DNA of 58,879 bases, counting the filler, from Dugesia japonica (lineage: Eukaryota): NCBI GenBank assembly GCA_001938525.1. It is 6 parts of 6 records of this genome, joined end to end, with 100 filler letters (N's around TTAATTAATTAA, not from the genome) between each part and the next. Parts side by side here need not be neighbours in the genome. Positions count along the whole stretch, not along the records: positions 10,711 to 19,369 come from MQRL01646551.1; 5 more parts are not named here. One strand, written 5' to 3'. Shown here one piece after another: positions 10,711-19,369 of this stretch (its first letter is position 1; each line of letters opens with the position of its first letter). The notes beneath the pieces were generated by a model. The model was not told the DNA's origin. It made no database searches and worked only from the letters and a program-made list of their open reading frames with translations. The translations under genes and the position numbers were made by a program.

Positions 10711-13700
10711 TTAAATAAAGTTTTACCAAAAGATATCAGAATTTTAGCCTGGAGTCCTGTTGATGAAGATTTTAGTGCTAGGTTATATTTCTGATTGTTA
10801 TTGTTTGTATGGATTTTCCTAATAGATTTAATTCTATAGGGCGATCATATAAGTATTTCTTCCCAAAATCTGATCTTTCAATTGAAGTAAATAGAATTTC
10901 AAATTGTAGTTTACTAATCAATAAAATTAGTCGATGAATGCAGCTGGGAAAAAACTCATAGGTTCACATGATTTTAGAAATTTTTGTTCAATGCAAATCA
11001 GTCAGGGTGTAACACATTTCGTACGGAATATATTCGATGTAACAGTCGAGCCTTATGATGAATTGTAGAGATTTATTGCAGATATTTATTGATTGATTTA
11101 TTTTACGGATAATTTCAGAGAAAAAGAAAGTGAACATAAAATATATGTAATAAACATTAGTGCTAGCTCATTTATTTATCATCAAATAAGATGCACTGTA
11201 GCAATATTGTTGATGATTGGACAGGGTAAAGAAGATATTGATGTTATCGACCATCTTCTTGATATTGAAGGGGTTGGAGGATTAGGAAAACCTTTCTATC
11301 AAATGGCTTCNNNNNNNNNNNNNNNNNNNNNNNNNNNNNNNNNNNNNNNNNNNNNNNNNNNNNNNNNNNNNNNNNNNNNNNNNNNNNNNNNNNNNNNNNN
11401 NNNNNNNNNNNNNNNNNNNNNNNNNNNNNNNNNNNNNNNNNNNNNNNNNNNNNNNNNNNNNNNNNNNNNNNNNNNNNNNNNNNNNNNNNNNNNNNNNNNN
11501 NNNTAATTTTTTTATTATAAATTTTATTTTTTAATAGTCTTTTTATTATTTATAATTACAAGAAGTATTGTGAGATTAATTTTGGGATTTGTGCCATTGA
11601 TCGCATTTAAGTTTCTATCAAAATAAAATGTATTTTTATAGAAAATCATTTTATTTTGATCATAGCTTTTTATTTTAATGAAATTTTTATTTTTTTATAT
11701 ATTTTTATTATTTATTTTATTATTAATTCAATTTTTTAATATTTAATTATTTTATTTTTTAATATTTTTTTTATTATTTAATTATTTTTTTATATTCTAT
11801 TAATTAAAAATTTTAAAAAAGATCTTTCCAATCAATTAAATAAATATAATTAAAACATTAAATGCACCGTGATTATTAGACAATTTTTTTNAAAAAAAAG
11901 TATAAATAACATTTTATTTTATATTATAAATTCGAGATTTTTTTTACTGTCCGAAAATTTAGGAATCAATTGGAAAAATCCATAAATCAATATTTAGAAA
12001 AAATATTCCATACAAATTAACCAATTCGTCTATTGGCAAAACATTTTAATAAATATTTTTCGACCTCATAATATAAGAACTTCACTGTGTTTAAATTAAT
12101 GAGTATTAATTTAAGTTTAAGACTAAAACAAGCATAAAAAAAATCAACGTAAAGAGATTTTTCAATTCATAAATTTGTCTCTCCACAAAAAATAGTTTAA
12201 ATAGCATTGAAGATCATCTTTAATTTCCATAGATTTTTTGCTTCGAATCTTATTTAAACCAATGGTAACATATTGAGCAATATACTCTCAAATTTTCACG
12301 TAATTATTGTACCAGGAAACAACATATCTTATATAATTGGCATAATGTTGTAGTTTTTCTAACCGACACAATATACATATACGGAATAAATCCAAACATT
12401 TCTATATTTTTTTATTATTTATTATATTTTTTTCAATTATTATTCTTAATTAAATTCAAATGACATTTACTTACTAAAGAAGGTCTCAAGAAAATACTTG
12501 TATTGGACAGTAAAATCATCAAAATTACAAGTACAAAAACTCTTCATAGTTATTTTAAGAAAACATAATCGAATCAAACTTAAGTAAAAAAATTTATTTA
12601 ATTCGATAATCTCATTATACGCGATGAGATATGATTCGAAAGAATTACCTTTTTTAGTAAAATGCAAAAGATAAACAAGTAAAATTTTACAATATTCAAT
12701 TAATTGATTTCTTTGACATCCGATTCGATTGAGTAATGCTCAATTACATTTTATTTTTGCAAAATAATTTTCAAAATTTCATAGTTGGATTACAAAAGAA
12801 AAATAGTTAAAGAAAAATTGATAATCGATTCAATTAAGGAGAATTCGTTGAAACATTACAATTTTTCGTATTCGCAAAATAATTTATATACTCCGATATA
12901 CAATAGCTGACTCGATATCAAATATTTTTATATTATTTCTCGTTAGTGTTATGTATCATGCGCATTTTGTACCGTGAACGTTATGCCTGTGTAGCGTTAT
13001 GTCGAATTAGTGTTGTCCGTTTATGTTTTATCGTGACACAGTGGGAATTTATTAGTCAAAACTCAAAGAATATCTTGTCCCCACTATAATTCATTACTTG
13101 TCTTTTGCTGAATTCGACAAATTTTCAAACCCGCTGAAATCAGAAATTTTTTGATGTTCTTATTACATAAAAAGTATCCAAAAGTAAGTTTTCATTTAGG
13201 CTAGATTTTTTGTAAATGTGAAATAATGTGTGATTCTTTGATTATTTGAAGGCTTATCATTGGCAGGGCCATTATAAGGCTCTCCTCTCAAAATAGGTAC
13301 ATTTTGACGAGCTTTATTAACTTTTAAATTGTGTATAGAGCACTTTTGTAGAACCACCAAACATTTTTCAGATTAATCCACAAAATCTTACATTTTGCTG
13401 TTTTCTTCTCGACTAAGTTCAATTAATGAGGCCACACTGAATTCGTATCTCCATTTATGATTGTACAGACTTTTTTTTGACGGTATTTTTTATAAGTAAT
13501 CTCACGAACATATATTATTTTACAATTACAAGAATTATTGCGAGAATAATTATTGAACGTAACCATTTATCGTTTTTCAGAATTCATTAAAAAAAGGTTA
13601 GTTAAAATTTTTTTTGTTTTTGATAATAATTCTAATTTTCGACTTTGTCTTCGTCAGGAAGTGACTTTTTGAAAAGTAAATTCCTGACGAAGACAAAGTC

Positions 13701-15217
13701 GAAAATTAGAATTATTATAAAACAAAACAAAAATATTTGATCGAAGCTTTCATTTTAATGAAATATATTATTTTACAATTGAAATTATTGTGGGAATAAT
13801 TGTTGGACTTAACCATTGATCGTTTTATAGAATTCATTTAAAATAAAAGCTTCGATCAAAATTTTTGTTTTATTTTTATTGATATTTGATAACAACTCGA
13901 TATTTCGACCTTGTCTTCGTCAGGAAGTGACTTTTTGAAAAGTAAATTCCTGACGAAGACAAGGTCGAAATATCGAATTGTTATCAAATATCAATAAAAA
14001 TAAAACAAAAATCTTGATCGAAGCTTTCATTTTAATGAAATATATTATTTTACAATTGAAATTATTGTGGGAATACTAGTTGGACATAACCATTGATCGT
14101 TTTATAGAATTCATTTAAAATAAAAGTTTCGATAAAAATTTTTGTTTTATTTTTATTGATATTTTATAATAATTCGATATTTCGACCTTGTCTTGAAAAA
14201 GTAAATTCCTGACGAAGACAAGGTGTAAATATCGAATTGTTATCAAATATCAATAAAAATAAAACAAAATTTTTGATCGAAGGTTTTATTGGAAATATTA
14301 TATTTAAAACGTAAAATAATTTTGAGAAATTTTTATTGAAATTTAAAATTGATTAAAAAAAAGAATTCATTTAAAATAAAAAGTGAAATATATTATTTTA
14401 CAATTGAAATTATTGTGGGAATAATTGTTGGACTTAACCATTGATCGTTTTATAGAATTCATTTAAAATAAAAGCTTCGATCAAAATTTTTGTTTTATTT
14501 TTATTGATATTTGAATTTATCAAAGACTAAGTCGAAATATCGAATTGTTATCAAATATCAATAAAAATAAAACAAAATTTTTGATCGAAGGTTTTATTGG
14601 AAATAATTATATTTTAAACGTAAAATAATTTTGAGAAATTTTTATTGAAATTTAAAATTGATTATAATTCCGAAAATGCCGGAGTTTTCGCGACCAAAAT
14701 TCGACCAGAATTGCAATCCTTACACATAAAATAAAAAATTTCAATTTTCGCTGTCGTATTTTTTCCTCTTTTCGTTGCAATTAATATCGACTTGGGAATG
14801 ATTTTAGATTTACCATTGGTTTTCTACGAAGCTTCATATGACGANATGGATTGGCAAACCAGTAAAGAAGCGGTCAATGATTATGTTGAAGATATCCAGA
14901 ACCTTTGGGTTTCTTATCAAACAAAGTTCACCACTTTGCTCTATATTTCCACATAAAATTATTCTATTTCAGACAGACAATATTGAAATTATTCTTGGAC
15001 GAAATCAATCTGAAACACTCCTCAGGTAAAATGATTTGGAATGAAAGAAAAATTTACAAAATTTCCAGATATCGAAAAAGTTTCTCTAGTCAATGCTATT
15101 AGCACTGATATTAAAGCTGACAAATGGAAGCCTCTTCTCAAAAGACCGAAAGAACTCACACTAAAAGAGAAATTAAACAATCACAGTAATAAAAAGCTGA
15201 AAGATTTTAATGAATAA
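10711..15217 (+). CDS. PUS3: tRNA pseudouridine(38/39) synthase, TruA family (5'-partial); exons 10711-10781, 10826-10886, 10931-11064, 11119->11310 (runs into gap), 14808-14925, 14973-15025, 15069-15217
   Basis: Spliced translation LNKVLPKDIRILAWSPVDEDFSARFNSIGRSYKYFFP...LIGSHDFRNFC...SSFIYHQIRC...KPFYQMA..DLPLVFYEASYD.MDW...KWKPLLKRPKE; GT-AG introns of 44, 44, 54, 47 and 43 bp keep frame; ~3.5-kb intron after exon 4. Confidence 0.92.
13628..13662 (-). ncRNA. Minimal type-I hammerhead ribozyme
   Basis: Minus strand acUUC-CUGACGA-A-GAC aaa GUC-GAA-AAUU-A^GAAuu; stem I only 3 contiguous bp. Confidence 0.72.
13679..13713 (+). ncRNA. Minimal type-I hammerhead ribozyme
   Basis: AAUUC-CUGACGA-A-GAC aaa GUC-GAA-AAUU-A^GAAUU: 5-bp stem I, 3-bp stem II, palindromic helix III, predicted cut after 13708. 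Confidence 0.82.
13894..13928 (-). ncRNA. Minimal type-I hammerhead ribozyme
   Basis: Minus strand acUUC-CUGACGA-A-GAC aag GUC-GAA-AUAU-C^GAGuu. Confidence 0.7.
13945..13979 (+). ncRNA. Minimal type-I hammerhead ribozyme
   Basis: AAUUC-CUGACGA-A-GAC aag GUC-GAA-AUAU-C^GAAUU; predicted cut after 13974 (AUC triplet). Confidence 0.85.
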
Positions 15218-15450
15218 ATTTTGACTTAATTTTTATTGTAATTAATTAATTAGAATTTTTTAATTAAATTTTTTTTTCATTATTTTAATAATTAAATTCA
15301 TAATTTTTTAAAAATTTTGTATTTAAATTTTTTAAATTTACATTCAAAAAATTTTAAAAAAAGCATTATTTTTGAAAAACACATTTTCTGTGAGGTTTAG
15401 TAATCTTAATCTTACTTATTAATTATCAATTTATTAAATTTCCTTTTACA

Positions 15451-15647
15451 CCTCTTCTCAAAAGACCGAAAGAACTCACTAAAAGAGAAATTAAACAATC
15501 ACAGTAATAAAAAGCTGAAAGATATTTATGAATAAATTTTGACTTAATTTTTATTGTAATTAATTAATTATAATTTTTTTCATTATTTTAATAATTAAAT
15601 TCATAATTTTTTAAAAATTTTGTTTTTAAATTTTTTAAATTTACATT
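15451..15647 (+). repeat. Local duplication of the PUS3 last-exon end and 3'UTR
   Basis: Near-identical to 15131-15345, with a 2-nt deletion (GAACTCACACTAAAAG vs GAACTCACTAAAAG). Confidence 0.9.
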
Positions 15648-15802
15648 NNNNNNNNNNNNNNNNNNNNNNNNNNNNNNNNNNNNNNNNNNNNNNNNNNNNN
15701 NNNNNNNNNNNNNNNNNNNNNNNNNNNNNNNNNNNNNNNNNNNNNNNNNNNNNNNNNNNNNNNNNNNNNNNNNNNNNNNNNNNNNNNNNNNNNNNNNNNN
15801 NN

Positions 15803-17105
15803 TAATTAATTAAAATTTTTTTCATTATTTTAACACTTAAATTCATAGTTTTACATTTAAAAAAATTAATTATGCTTTCTATTCTATACACTGTGACACA
15901 TTTCCTATCAGGTTTAGGGTATTTCCACTGAAACCGTTGAAATAATTTTTAAAAATCATGTAGCACATCTTTTACACCAGAGGTGCGCAACTTAGTAATT
16001 TTTTAATAAAATTTTTTTTCATTATTTTACCATTTAAATTCGTAATTTTTAAAAAAAAATTTTGTTTAAAATTTACATTAAAAAATAAATGATGCACTCT
16101 ATTGGTGGAAATAAGCATACGCTGTTACACATTTTTCTACGAGATTTAGTTTAGGTAACTCCCACTAGGACCGCTGAAGTAATTTTTAAAAATCATGTAG
16201 CTCATGTTACACTAGGTGTTCACAACTTAAGCTATTTTTTGTAATTAATTAAAATTTTTTTCATTATTTTAACTCTTAAATTCATAATTTTTCATTTTAC
16301 ATTAAAAAAATTAATTATGCTTTCTATTCTAATCATGTAGCTCATGTTAACACCAGGTGTTCGCAACTTTAGCTATTTTTTGTAATTAATTAATTTTCAT
16401 TATTTTAACACTTAAATTCATAATTTTTTATTTTACATTAAAAAATAAATGATGCTTTCTATTCGGGGAAATAAACATTGTGAAATCGCTTTGACACATA
16501 TCCTACCAGGTTTAGTTTAGGGTATTTCCACTGAAACTTGAAATAATTTTTAAAAATCATGTAGCACATATTTTACACCAGAAGTGCGCAACTTAGTTAT
16601 TTTTTATAATTTTTTAACTAAAATGTTTTTCATTATTTTAACACTTAAATTCGTAATTTTTAAAAAAAATTTTAATTTCAAATTTACATTAAAAACTAAA
16701 TGATGCACTCTATTGGTGGAAATAAACATACGCTGTTACACATTTTTCTACGAGGTTTAGTTTAGGTAATTCCCACTAGCACCCCTAAAATAATTTTTAA
16801 AAATCATGTAGCTCATGTTACAGTAGGTGTTCACAACTTAAGCTATTTTTTGTAATTAATTAATTAGAATTTTTTCATTATGTTGATGTTTGAATGCACG
16901 ATTCTTTCCTTTTACTTTAAAAATAAACGGTGGGTTTCTATTGCATATATCATTTAATTTCACCAAAAGTTCATATAACTGATGCCGTCTATTTGTGAAA
17001 TACTGGAAAAAAAACACTACATACGCTGTTACACATTTTCTACGGGGTTTAAGTAAGATAACTCCCACTACATCTACTGAAATAATTTGTAAAAACCATG
17101 TAGTA
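15803..17105 (+). repeat. Tandem array of ~140-245 bp units in two subtypes
   Basis: About six units sharing TTTTCATTATTTTAACACTTAAATTCATAATTTT...AAAAATCATGTAGC...CAACTTA. Confidence 0.85.
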
Positions 17106-17554
17106 ACTTTAGCTAATGACGACAGCATAGAATAATTTTTTTTACAACAGCTATAGTATTACAGCATATATGAATTATTAATTGTATCTAATCTAATCTT
17201 ATTTCAATTGTGAATTCATTTCTAATTATTTCAATGTTTAAAATTGTCAATGGTTTTCATGTTAAAAATGATTTTACATATTTTCTGTGGACGTGTTCAG
17301 TGTAGTTTTATTTGTTTTTACAAAATTATTTTCAGATTTTTCCTGATTATTTCTATAACATTTAACTATTCAGAGGTTTCTCAACCTTTATACGTTGTTT
17401 TATTAAAGTTTCTTTGTCATTTTGATGTGTTGATTGGTTAAAATGTTTTTTTACTAGATTTATTTTATTTGCCTGGAGTGTGAGAATAGTTTCCAAATGT
17501 TTAATGTTTAAAAAGTTATAATGTTCCTTGGCTTTTATAAATGATAAAATGAAA

Positions 17555-17950
17555 TGATATTAGATGCTAGTTTTGAGCCATTAGAGTAGTTTTAAGCCAA
17601 GTTTAAACGACAGGTTAAAACGAGCAATAGCTTATGGTTCTCACAAGTTAAATGATCACAAAAAAAATATTGTGTAACTTCCAAAGACATTTTGGCATTG
17701 CTCTATTTCATAGAGTATTAAAAGCATTATACCCGAAAAAAATTAGAGCAAGAACAGATCATAAAACTCTGACATTTATGACGAAGACGAGTGAGCATAT
17801 TACTTCGCTATTCTAAACAAGGATTACAAATTTAGTAGAATTTAATTTTGATCTAGAATTCAGAAAACAAGCAGCGTATGGGAATGTTGATGGACTTACA
17901 AGAATAGGCGAAAGCTGCTGTTCAGAATTACAGACGTCAAGATGCTAAGG
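17555..17950 (+). mobile_element. Ty3/gypsy RNase H remnant
   Basis: LDASF, RAIAYGSHKL...YCVTSKDILAL, RTDHKTLTFM, FDLEFRKQAAYGNVDGLTR across frameshifts. Confidence 0.85.
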
Positions 17951-18184
17951 TGTAAACGGAAATCTAATAAATTGATAATTAATAAGTAAGATTTAAATTA
18001 GGCGAGTATCATGTGAAACGAACCCGAACCAAAGGGTTGCGAGTCTGTACTCGAGCTACGAGTCAAGGGCTTCATCCCGAAGATCTGAATTTTTTGGGGA
18101 CACCAGATTAAATTCTTCGAGGGGTTTTATTTGGACAACTACCCTAGATTTTGTCTACTCACTTAGATAAAATCCCAACAATTA

Positions 18185-18390
18185 TAATTTAAAATAAAAG
18201 CTTTGATCAAAATTTTTTGTTTTTATTTTTATTGATATTTGATAACAATTTGATTTTTCGAATTGTTATTAAATATCAATAAAAATAAAACAAAAAATTT
18301 TGATCGAAGCTTTTATTTTAAATGAATTCTGTAAAACGATCAATGGTTATGTCCAACAATTATTCTCACAATAATTGCAATTGTAAAAAA
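18185..18390. mobile_element. Palindromic PLE pLTR pair lacking the hammerhead core
   Basis: Inverted repeat centred at ~18259; same family as 13511-14660. Confidence 0.85.
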
Positions 18391-18599
18391 TAATAATAAT
18401 AAAATTAATAATAATAGTTAGGATAGAAGATTCTTCCATAATACTTATTTATTAAAATTCAAAAACAACATACCTGAATAAACTAATTTTTACAATTAAA
18501 ATAATATTAATAATTTTCTCAATTATTAAAATGAAATTATATGCATGAATATAAGTGATTTATATCTACTTTCCTCTCTTCAAATTTTGAATTTCAATC

Positions 18600-19150
18600 T
18601 CCTTCAGCCATTCAAATTTTCTGGGTTTGGGCTTCCTTGCATGATCTATAAACATCTGTTATGAAGTTATGAATTTTGTTATTTGATATGGGTCTTCAGA
18701 TCTGAAACTGTCTTTCTTCAGCTTGTGTGAATCAACTTTTACAAATACTTCCTTCCCATCACTAAATTNTCTATATGTTCGTCTGACATATTCATATTTG
18801 CGTAATCTTTTAGCTGGTTCTTGTAAATTTCCCTTTTCTACTTGCTTAATTTTTACCATCTAAATTTTTTAGTTGTGGTAGCCCATGTAAAACTCTATTT
18901 CTTTCAAAGATTTTTTCGAAAGGAAATAATCCAGATTATTTCTGTAATGTCAAATTCATAGTAAATTGTATTTGAGATATTAATTTGTGGCAGTTTACTT
19001 CCGAGCATTCATCTTTTCTTGTTGTTACGACATTTATCAAATTTTTTTTATCTAATATTGTTTCTTTTAAACCAAACTCGTTTTCTCTTGGCATCTTGAC
19101 TATGTTTTTGTTACATCTAAATGCTTCGCTTTCTTTTCTGACGACAATTT
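18600..19150 (-). mobile_element. Probable Ty3/gypsy integrase C-terminal remnant
   Basis: FSDGKEVFVKVD...FRSEDPYQITKFIT resembles the GPY/F module; heavily decayed. Confidence 0.5.
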
Positions 19151-19369
19151 TTCAACTTCGAGTCTACTTGTCGCCATTTTTAATTTCAGTACCCAGTGTT
19201 TCACCCCAACAGTATTATAGTTTTTAAAATATTATCTGAGAAGACCATAGAAGAACAGAGAACAACCCATGAAAAATTATTTGAAATAATTGACCAAAGA
19301 GAAACGTTCTACAAGCAGGTAACAGATCATCAACAGAACTGGAAAACCAGAGCAGATGGAAATCTAAAT

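Follow-up and report, generated by a model that had tools for sequence, protein, structure and literature searches.

The window analysed here, a 58,879-nucleotide stretch (filler included) joined from parts of six records of the Dugesia japonica assembly GCA_001938525.1, contains at positions 10,711 to 19,369 (record MQRL01646551.1) a very AT-rich piece that holds the 3' half of the PUS3 gene (TruA family) and, within one of its introns, an array of palindromic units carrying hammerhead ribozyme motifs. According to our analysis, this array is probably a decaying cluster of repeats of Penelope-like origin.

The PUS3 exons on either side of the intron, whose homologues were searched separately, give alignments that are colinear to residue 287 (11308) and resume at residue 291 (14813), with almost no residues missing across the array-bearing interval. 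The best overall homologue among 150 is a protein of the tapeworm Taenia crassiceps, and the exons upstream of the intron match Pfam PF01416. Because the homologue alignments stop at 11308 and restart at 14798-14813, the array is placed within a single PUS3 intron of about 3.5 kb, where the initial annotation had also put it; the donor end of this intron lies at or inside an N gap. The RNA evidence used here comes from oligo-dT and cDNA library runs, partly read, in which circles and small RNAs would be missed, and the sampled animals may not carry the array in their PUS3 intron. Reads of a stranded oligo-dT run cover the PUS3 exons on one strand at a depth of 9-25, against about 0 over the unique flanks within the intron, showing that the intron with the array is spliced out. 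The features of the locus are as follows.

10711 to 11310, plus strand: PUS3 (TruA family) exons 5' of the intron, identified by PF01416 and homologue alignment, cut by the piece edge and the N gap.
13518 to 13669, minus strand: unit 1 long arm, resembling a pseudo-long terminal repeat (pLTR), with a 3' extension; core 13637-13657, N17 at 13633, helix I of 3 bp; family boundary near 13518 from contig starts.
13663 to 13678, no strand assigned: unit 1 junction, palindromic except for two asymmetric mismatches (13661, 13678) that recur in unit 2.
13672 to 13760, plus strand: unit 1 short inverted arm; core 13684-13704, AAUU helix III, N17 at 13708, helix I of 5 bp.
13768 to 13935, minus strand: unit 2 long arm; core 13903-13923, AUAU helix III, N17 at 13899, helix I of 3 bp.
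13938 to 14037, plus strand: unit 2 short arm; core 13950-13970, N17 at 13974; pairs with the long arm in a 98-bp hairpin (95% complementarity).
14045 to 14289, no strand assigned: unit 3; the left core is missing through a deletion and the right one is disrupted at 14225-14226, with the half bearing the cleavage site preserved (N17 at 14233).
14290 to 14356, plus strand: low-copy flank; second copy at 14598-14666 (97%), marking unit 3 and its flank as locally duplicated together; depth about 120 against 1e5-1e6 in the arms.
14393 to 14597, no strand assigned: unit 4; a central deletion removed both cores; extension identical to that of unit 2 (75/75).
14799 to 15217, plus strand: three PUS3 exons 3' of the intron, from homologue alignment; spliced and stranded in poly(A) RNA.
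18187 to 18391, no strand assigned: fifth palindrome, dispersed, in opposite orientation, coreless, ending at an AAT run.

Four complete hammerhead cores are present (two on each strand), exactly where the initial annotation had located them, and form two head-to-head pairs followed by two damaged units. Each core consists, in order, of helix I, CUGACGA, one extra A, helix II, GAAA, a loopless palindromic helix III and UH. Helix II has in all four 3 bp (GAC/GUC) and a 3-nt loop and is closed by G10.1-C11.1, the two arms of unit 1 share the helix III sequence AAUU, those of unit 2 the sequence AUAU, and helix I measures 5 bp in the right arms and 3 bp in the left arms. The 16-nt spacer between paired cores is identical in units 1 and 2. 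A descriptor of the full hammerhead found these 4 matches in the piece, and 0 of 3000 dinucleotide shuffles gave any. Units 1 and 2 differ at five positions within the first 47 nt of the arm, located in the helix II loop, at both central bases of helix III (AAUU to AUAU), at N17 (A or C) and one base past the 5-bp helix I. When five changes were introduced at random, the motif was kept in 1.3% of trials, and kept together with a compensatory change in helix III in 0.03%; the retention of the motif including such a change therefore indicates that the motif is real and that selection acted on the fold as the family evolved.

The minimal hammerheads of Penelope-like elements (PLEs) are characterized by an extra base between positions 9 and 10.1, the G10.1-C11.1 pair and a palindromic 15.2-16.2 stretch (PMC4209133), all of which are present in the cores, the last with compensatory variation (AAUU versus AUAU). 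By these sequence features the cores are classified as putative PLE-type minimal type-I hammerheads, in line with the assignment made in the initial annotation. They share with the PLE motifs described by Cervera and de la Pena in 2014 (PMC4209133) the core, the extra base, the G10.1-C11.1 pair, the loopless palindromic helix III and the short helix I, as well as the occurrence in thousands of dispersed copies. In Schistosoma, the same study reported minimal hammerheads that occur as pairs on opposite strands at distances of 100-700 bp. In contrast to these, the opposite-strand cores of the array are just 26 nt apart with no linked ORF (open reading frame) seen, and helix II has 3 bp instead of the 7-8 bp of the Schistosoma families. 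The canonical type-I hammerhead with loop 1-loop 2 contacts is not matched, helix II having 3 bp and loop 1 not being closed, and an Rfam search up to E 10 returned no hammerhead family, only generic hairpin (miRNA) matches far below the cut-offs.

Tandem Repeats Finder (TRF) assigns the array a period of 277 bp and 2.6 copies, and the start-to-start distances between units are 250, 277 and 348. The layout of four inverted pairs proposed in the initial annotation is real but requires refinement, since the arms are unequal: a unit consists of a long arm (about 150-170 nt, hammerhead-sense on the minus strand) head to head with a short arm (about 95 nt, plus strand), and what appears as a linker between palindromes is an extension of the long arm. 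The palindromes have arm-to-arm identities of 89% and 95%. In a typical Penelope insertion an adjacent inverted pLTR is shorter than the direct one, one copy carries a tail and palindromes occur at the head-to-head junction (PMC3846280); this layout is also known from other clades (Craig et al. 2021, PMC8557442). The array resembles the Penelope/Poseidon junctions (Adineta vaga, PMC3846280; PMC8557442) in its head-to-head repeats, in the palindrome at the junction, in having one shorter arm and the extension on the other, and in its complex tandem and inverted insertions at AT-rich sites, whereas it lacks an ORF and a third (direct) pLTR and repeats the pair locally four times. The head-to-head layout is the usual inverted-pLTR junction of Penelope elements, already described, and by analogy the array would behave like a solo inverted-pLTR pair, its units being non-autonomous as initially annotated. 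The long-arm extension (13768-13837 on the minus strand and equivalents) opens with ATG and has 22-25 stop-free codons in three of five copies; this frame could be a candidate ORF start of the kind that pLTR tails usually overlap. Family variants in it are mostly non-synonymous, and no coding constraint was seen.

Among units 2, 3 and 4 the extensions show 96-100% identity, while that of unit 1 is 82-85% identical to them, and the 67-nt low-copy flank stands after both unit 3 and unit 4 (97%). The duplicated flank and the shared variants point to a local duplication that came after two units from different subfamilies had become neighbours. The damage to units 3 and 4 noted in the initial annotation stands, with a different extent: the right core of unit 3 carries two changes (G for C11.1 at 14225, U for G12 at 14226) and its left core is deleted, and unit 4 has lost both cores. 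In the fifth palindrome (18187-18391) both cores are gone through a central deletion that fits a 4-nt microhomology, bringing the loss of central sequence to three of the five palindromes of the piece.

Beyond the locus, about 36,000 contigs align to the array in each of two genome-scale contig sets that stem from separate studies (each genomic run totalling 0.76-0.93 Gb of contigs), with a summed contig depth of 1e5-1e6 over the arms against 12 on the flanks. As summed depth is no copy number, it was divided by flank depth, with and without a 31-fold overlap correction, and the resulting range is 1,600-60,000 cores and 6,000-230,000 extensions. Copies of the arm repeat are spread across the genome and number at least in the thousands. 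Loose ends with mixed flanks gather at the palindrome centre, at 13938 (runs X1, X4 and X22) and 13670 (X22), which suggests that many copies consist of one arm only, starting at a fixed 5' position 12 nt ahead of the core. Contigs also contain joints of a shortened left arm to the right-arm start, as well as joints across deleted centres, which suggest 5'-truncated inverted partners and centre-deleted palindromes elsewhere in the genome. Exact-pattern scans of metagenome, viral and prokaryote collections gave no match, and in the literature we found no description of an abundant hammerhead-bearing, Penelope-derived repeat in a planarian-like host.

In our view the units are probably pLTRs of a high-copy Penelope-like family without an ORF, present here as a small cluster that was duplicated locally and is decaying; the Penelope origin and the order of duplications are what we infer from the observations above. 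The basic element would be a single arm of about 170 nt, in which a minimal type-I hammerhead follows 12 nt after the start. A full arm may have been inserted head to head with a shorter inverted copy by an autonomous Penelope-like protein that was not seen, two such units of different subfamilies coming to lie side by side, and unequal exchange may then have copied the second into units 3 and 4. In the PUS3 pre-mRNA each ribozyme, preceded by its own antisense, is predicted to zip into a hairpin of 66-98 bp and not to cleave, and the palindromes would lose their centres with time, as seen in three of the five. The ribozyme would be relevant to the source elements of the family, where same-sequence direct-repeat cores can dimerise, and not to the PUS3 locus. 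Several points weigh against this explanation. An autonomous Penelope-like ORF (reverse transcriptase plus GIY-YIG) with the arm was not found within the piece, and membership of Penelope for this reason rests on motif and layout. No convincing target-site duplication was detected, the search having returned only 6-7 nt AT-rich matches around the units, and the extension measures about 75 nt whereas Penelope pLTR tails have 30-40 nt. Furthermore, other genomic copies are known via depth, variant and joint tables and not as full loci, and the folding energies reported below are computed without tertiary contacts and proteins.

The alternative that survives best, although we regard it as unlikely, takes the ORF-less, self-locked palindromic unit with two hammerheads as the replicating entity: RNA of the long arm plus junction would fold back at its 3' end and prime the short arm, the junction being inherited and the second arm remade at each insertion. 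Units 1 and 2 have both asymmetric junction mismatches in common, one of these letters being rare (about 1% of family depth), while the five substitutions further from the junction are symmetric within each unit and different between the two units, both unit 1 arms being shorter there. This is the pattern that would be predicted by the self-priming on an antisense template proposed for the formation of inverted pLTRs (PMC3846280), a process still listed as unexplained (PMC8557442), and self-priming that starts between arm positions 10 and 25 would explain it directly. However, the comparison involves only two informative units, and the pattern could also be produced by DNA template switching, which likewise homogenises inverted arms (PMC8604942), together with ectopic conversion, for which thousands of donors could supply subfamily variants. 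The many family copies that appear to be single arms likewise count against it. With the family-majority letters at 13661/13927 and 13678/13944 the junction palindrome becomes perfect and the unit-2 type gains a 6-bp helix I; helix I is weaker in the copies at the PUS3 locus than in this majority-letter version. Priming by hammerhead cleavage at N17 was also considered and rejected, given that it predicts inherited short-arm positions up to 37 and leaves the symmetry at positions 26-37 unexplained. Self-priming refines the pLTR-cluster explanation more than it replaces it. While the locus itself represents ordinary repeat decay, the family copies provide a sequence-only test of the self-priming hypothesis of 2013; if it is true, they would map the priming point to arm positions 10-25, in what would be the first population-scale test of the formation of Penelope inverted repeats.

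The initial annotation had proposed a bidirectional retrozyme-like array, in which the hairpins switch to double hammerheads and free 270-nt monomers or circles from either strand, including the PUS3 pre-mRNA, and this we deem very improbable. The array shares with animal non-LTR (long terminal repeat) retrozymes (PMC7229834; bioRxiv 10.64898/2026.07.22.740005) a non-coding tandem repeat of retrozyme-like size with type-I hammerheads. Having two consecutive complete cores per strand at a spacing of 266 nt, it formally falls under the working definition of the latter study, according to which animal tandem retrozymes derive from pLTRs by local amplification and are often intronic (about 43% of Xenopus copies). 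In the animal retrozymes described in PMC7229834, however, the direct repeats contain canonical hammerheads that cleave efficiently, and circular RNA is produced, whereas the PUS3 array has a minimal motif, every copy of which pairs with its antisense, and its adjacent cores are incompatible as dimers; the array has neither the canonical ribozyme nor the dimer-compatible consecutive units of a retrozyme. Published minimal hammerheads cleave weakly even as dimers (PMC4209133), and eight of nine predicted hammerhead dimers were without cleavage (bioRxiv 10.64898/2026.07.22.740005).

The long silent hairpins that formed the other half of that proposal are borne out by the computed folds. Unit 2 folds at -126 to -136 kcal/mol, in the ensemble of the array the pairing of the intact cores exceeds 99%, and on both strands of a head-to-head pair the antisense arm is transcribed ahead of the ribozyme. 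The penalty for an active fold in the array is 54-97 kcal/mol overall, compared with 5-18 for two free arms in the same model; making one site active takes 96-97 kcal/mol when units 1 and 2 are combined. The sole cis combination with a full helix III, the right core of unit 2 acting on the site of unit 3 or 4, is 54-62 kcal/mol uphill, and still 14-25 kcal/mol when the transcript begins at the centre of unit 2. The cores of units 1 and 2 pair only two of the four helix III positions with each other, and because of this mismatch between AAUU and AUAU no matched cis dimer would cut 13708 and 13974 or free a 270-nt monomer. The model thus predicts that the ribozymes in the PUS3 pre-mRNA are locked in hairpins without cleavage.

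In the stranded oligo-dT run, the 1,351 RNA reads on the array are mostly 90-95% alike, and 92% of them continue into other sequence. At the cores 173 reads are sense and 104 antisense, a mild sense excess among reads that are not independent; family RNA in both orientations is what a bidirectional array would give. No start or end hotspots were present on the array in the aligned oligo-dT and cDNA runs as far as read, and no abundant monomeric linear or circular RNA was seen in them, circles being of a kind that these runs would miss. The RNA on the array is low two-way passenger transcription of other family copies. As to the A-to-I editing that had been suggested for the hairpins, A>G plus T>C changes account for 24 of 155 variant places in RNA and 8 of 71 in contigs, with no clear excess in the RNA runs examined, and the sole RNA-enriched T>C (13995) occurs on both strands. 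A promoter scan used a bacterial model and was uninformative. Thousands of 100-bp intronic hairpins might conceivably feed small-RNA pathways.

Miniature inverted-repeat transposable elements (MITEs) and foldback elements are short, palindromic, intronic and present in high copy. The array has these properties, being AT-rich and hairpin-forming as well, and might be a DNA element of this type that arose from a hammerhead palindrome and is moved by a DNA transposase with the ribozyme as a passenger. The dispersed coreless palindrome at 18187-18391 and the contig joints that suggest centre-deleted copies elsewhere would fit. Nevertheless, we give this origin little credence: with unequal arms the outer ends are not terminal inverted repeats, the fixed boundary from which many copies begin is at the centre and not at the outer ends, no clear target duplication is present, and the subfamily variation preserves the ribozyme fold.

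A fold-back or assembly artefact as the source of the palindromes or of the tandem is hardly credible. In favour of it, the assembly is gapped, the array is nowhere covered by one contig from end to end, and among the contigs listed none passes through the centre of unit 1 or of unit 2. On the other side, the arms are imperfect copies (89% and 95%). Contigs at single-copy depth from run X1, possibly the source sample, agree without difference with the inner junctions 14240-14355 and 14326-14413, and the left edge is crossed by a contig from X4, a run that departs from the window at exon positions; these contigs over the left edge and the junctions of units 3-4 argue against an artefact.

Other repeats and remnants occur in the same piece. 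At 17590-18010 on the plus strand, broken reading frames with several stops and frame changes resemble the RNase H region of a Ty3/gypsy-type retrotransposon. A broken minus-strand frame at 18560-19176 (about 200 codons) was considered as a Penelope N-terminus and rejected, its unbroken pieces being without homologue in a word search; one of these pieces gave a weak Atlas lead to the SH3 tail of an LTR-retrotransposon integrase. A second AT-rich repeat family extends over 15803-17110, with spacings of 136, 237 and 611 nt and up to 93% identity over 257 nt, and contains no hammerhead motif by the descriptor. The PUS3 3' region (15401-15453) has a 53-nt inverted match (92%) with the retrotransposon-like remnant at 17948-18000, and the end of the last PUS3 coding exon, comprising the stop codon and the sequence after it (15159-15261), is repeated 318 nt downstream at 15477-15579 (97%). 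At the other end of the array-bearing intron, adjoining the N gap, a diverged fragment of the long-arm extension (11528-11587, 72-76%) represents an older copy of the hammerhead-arm family.

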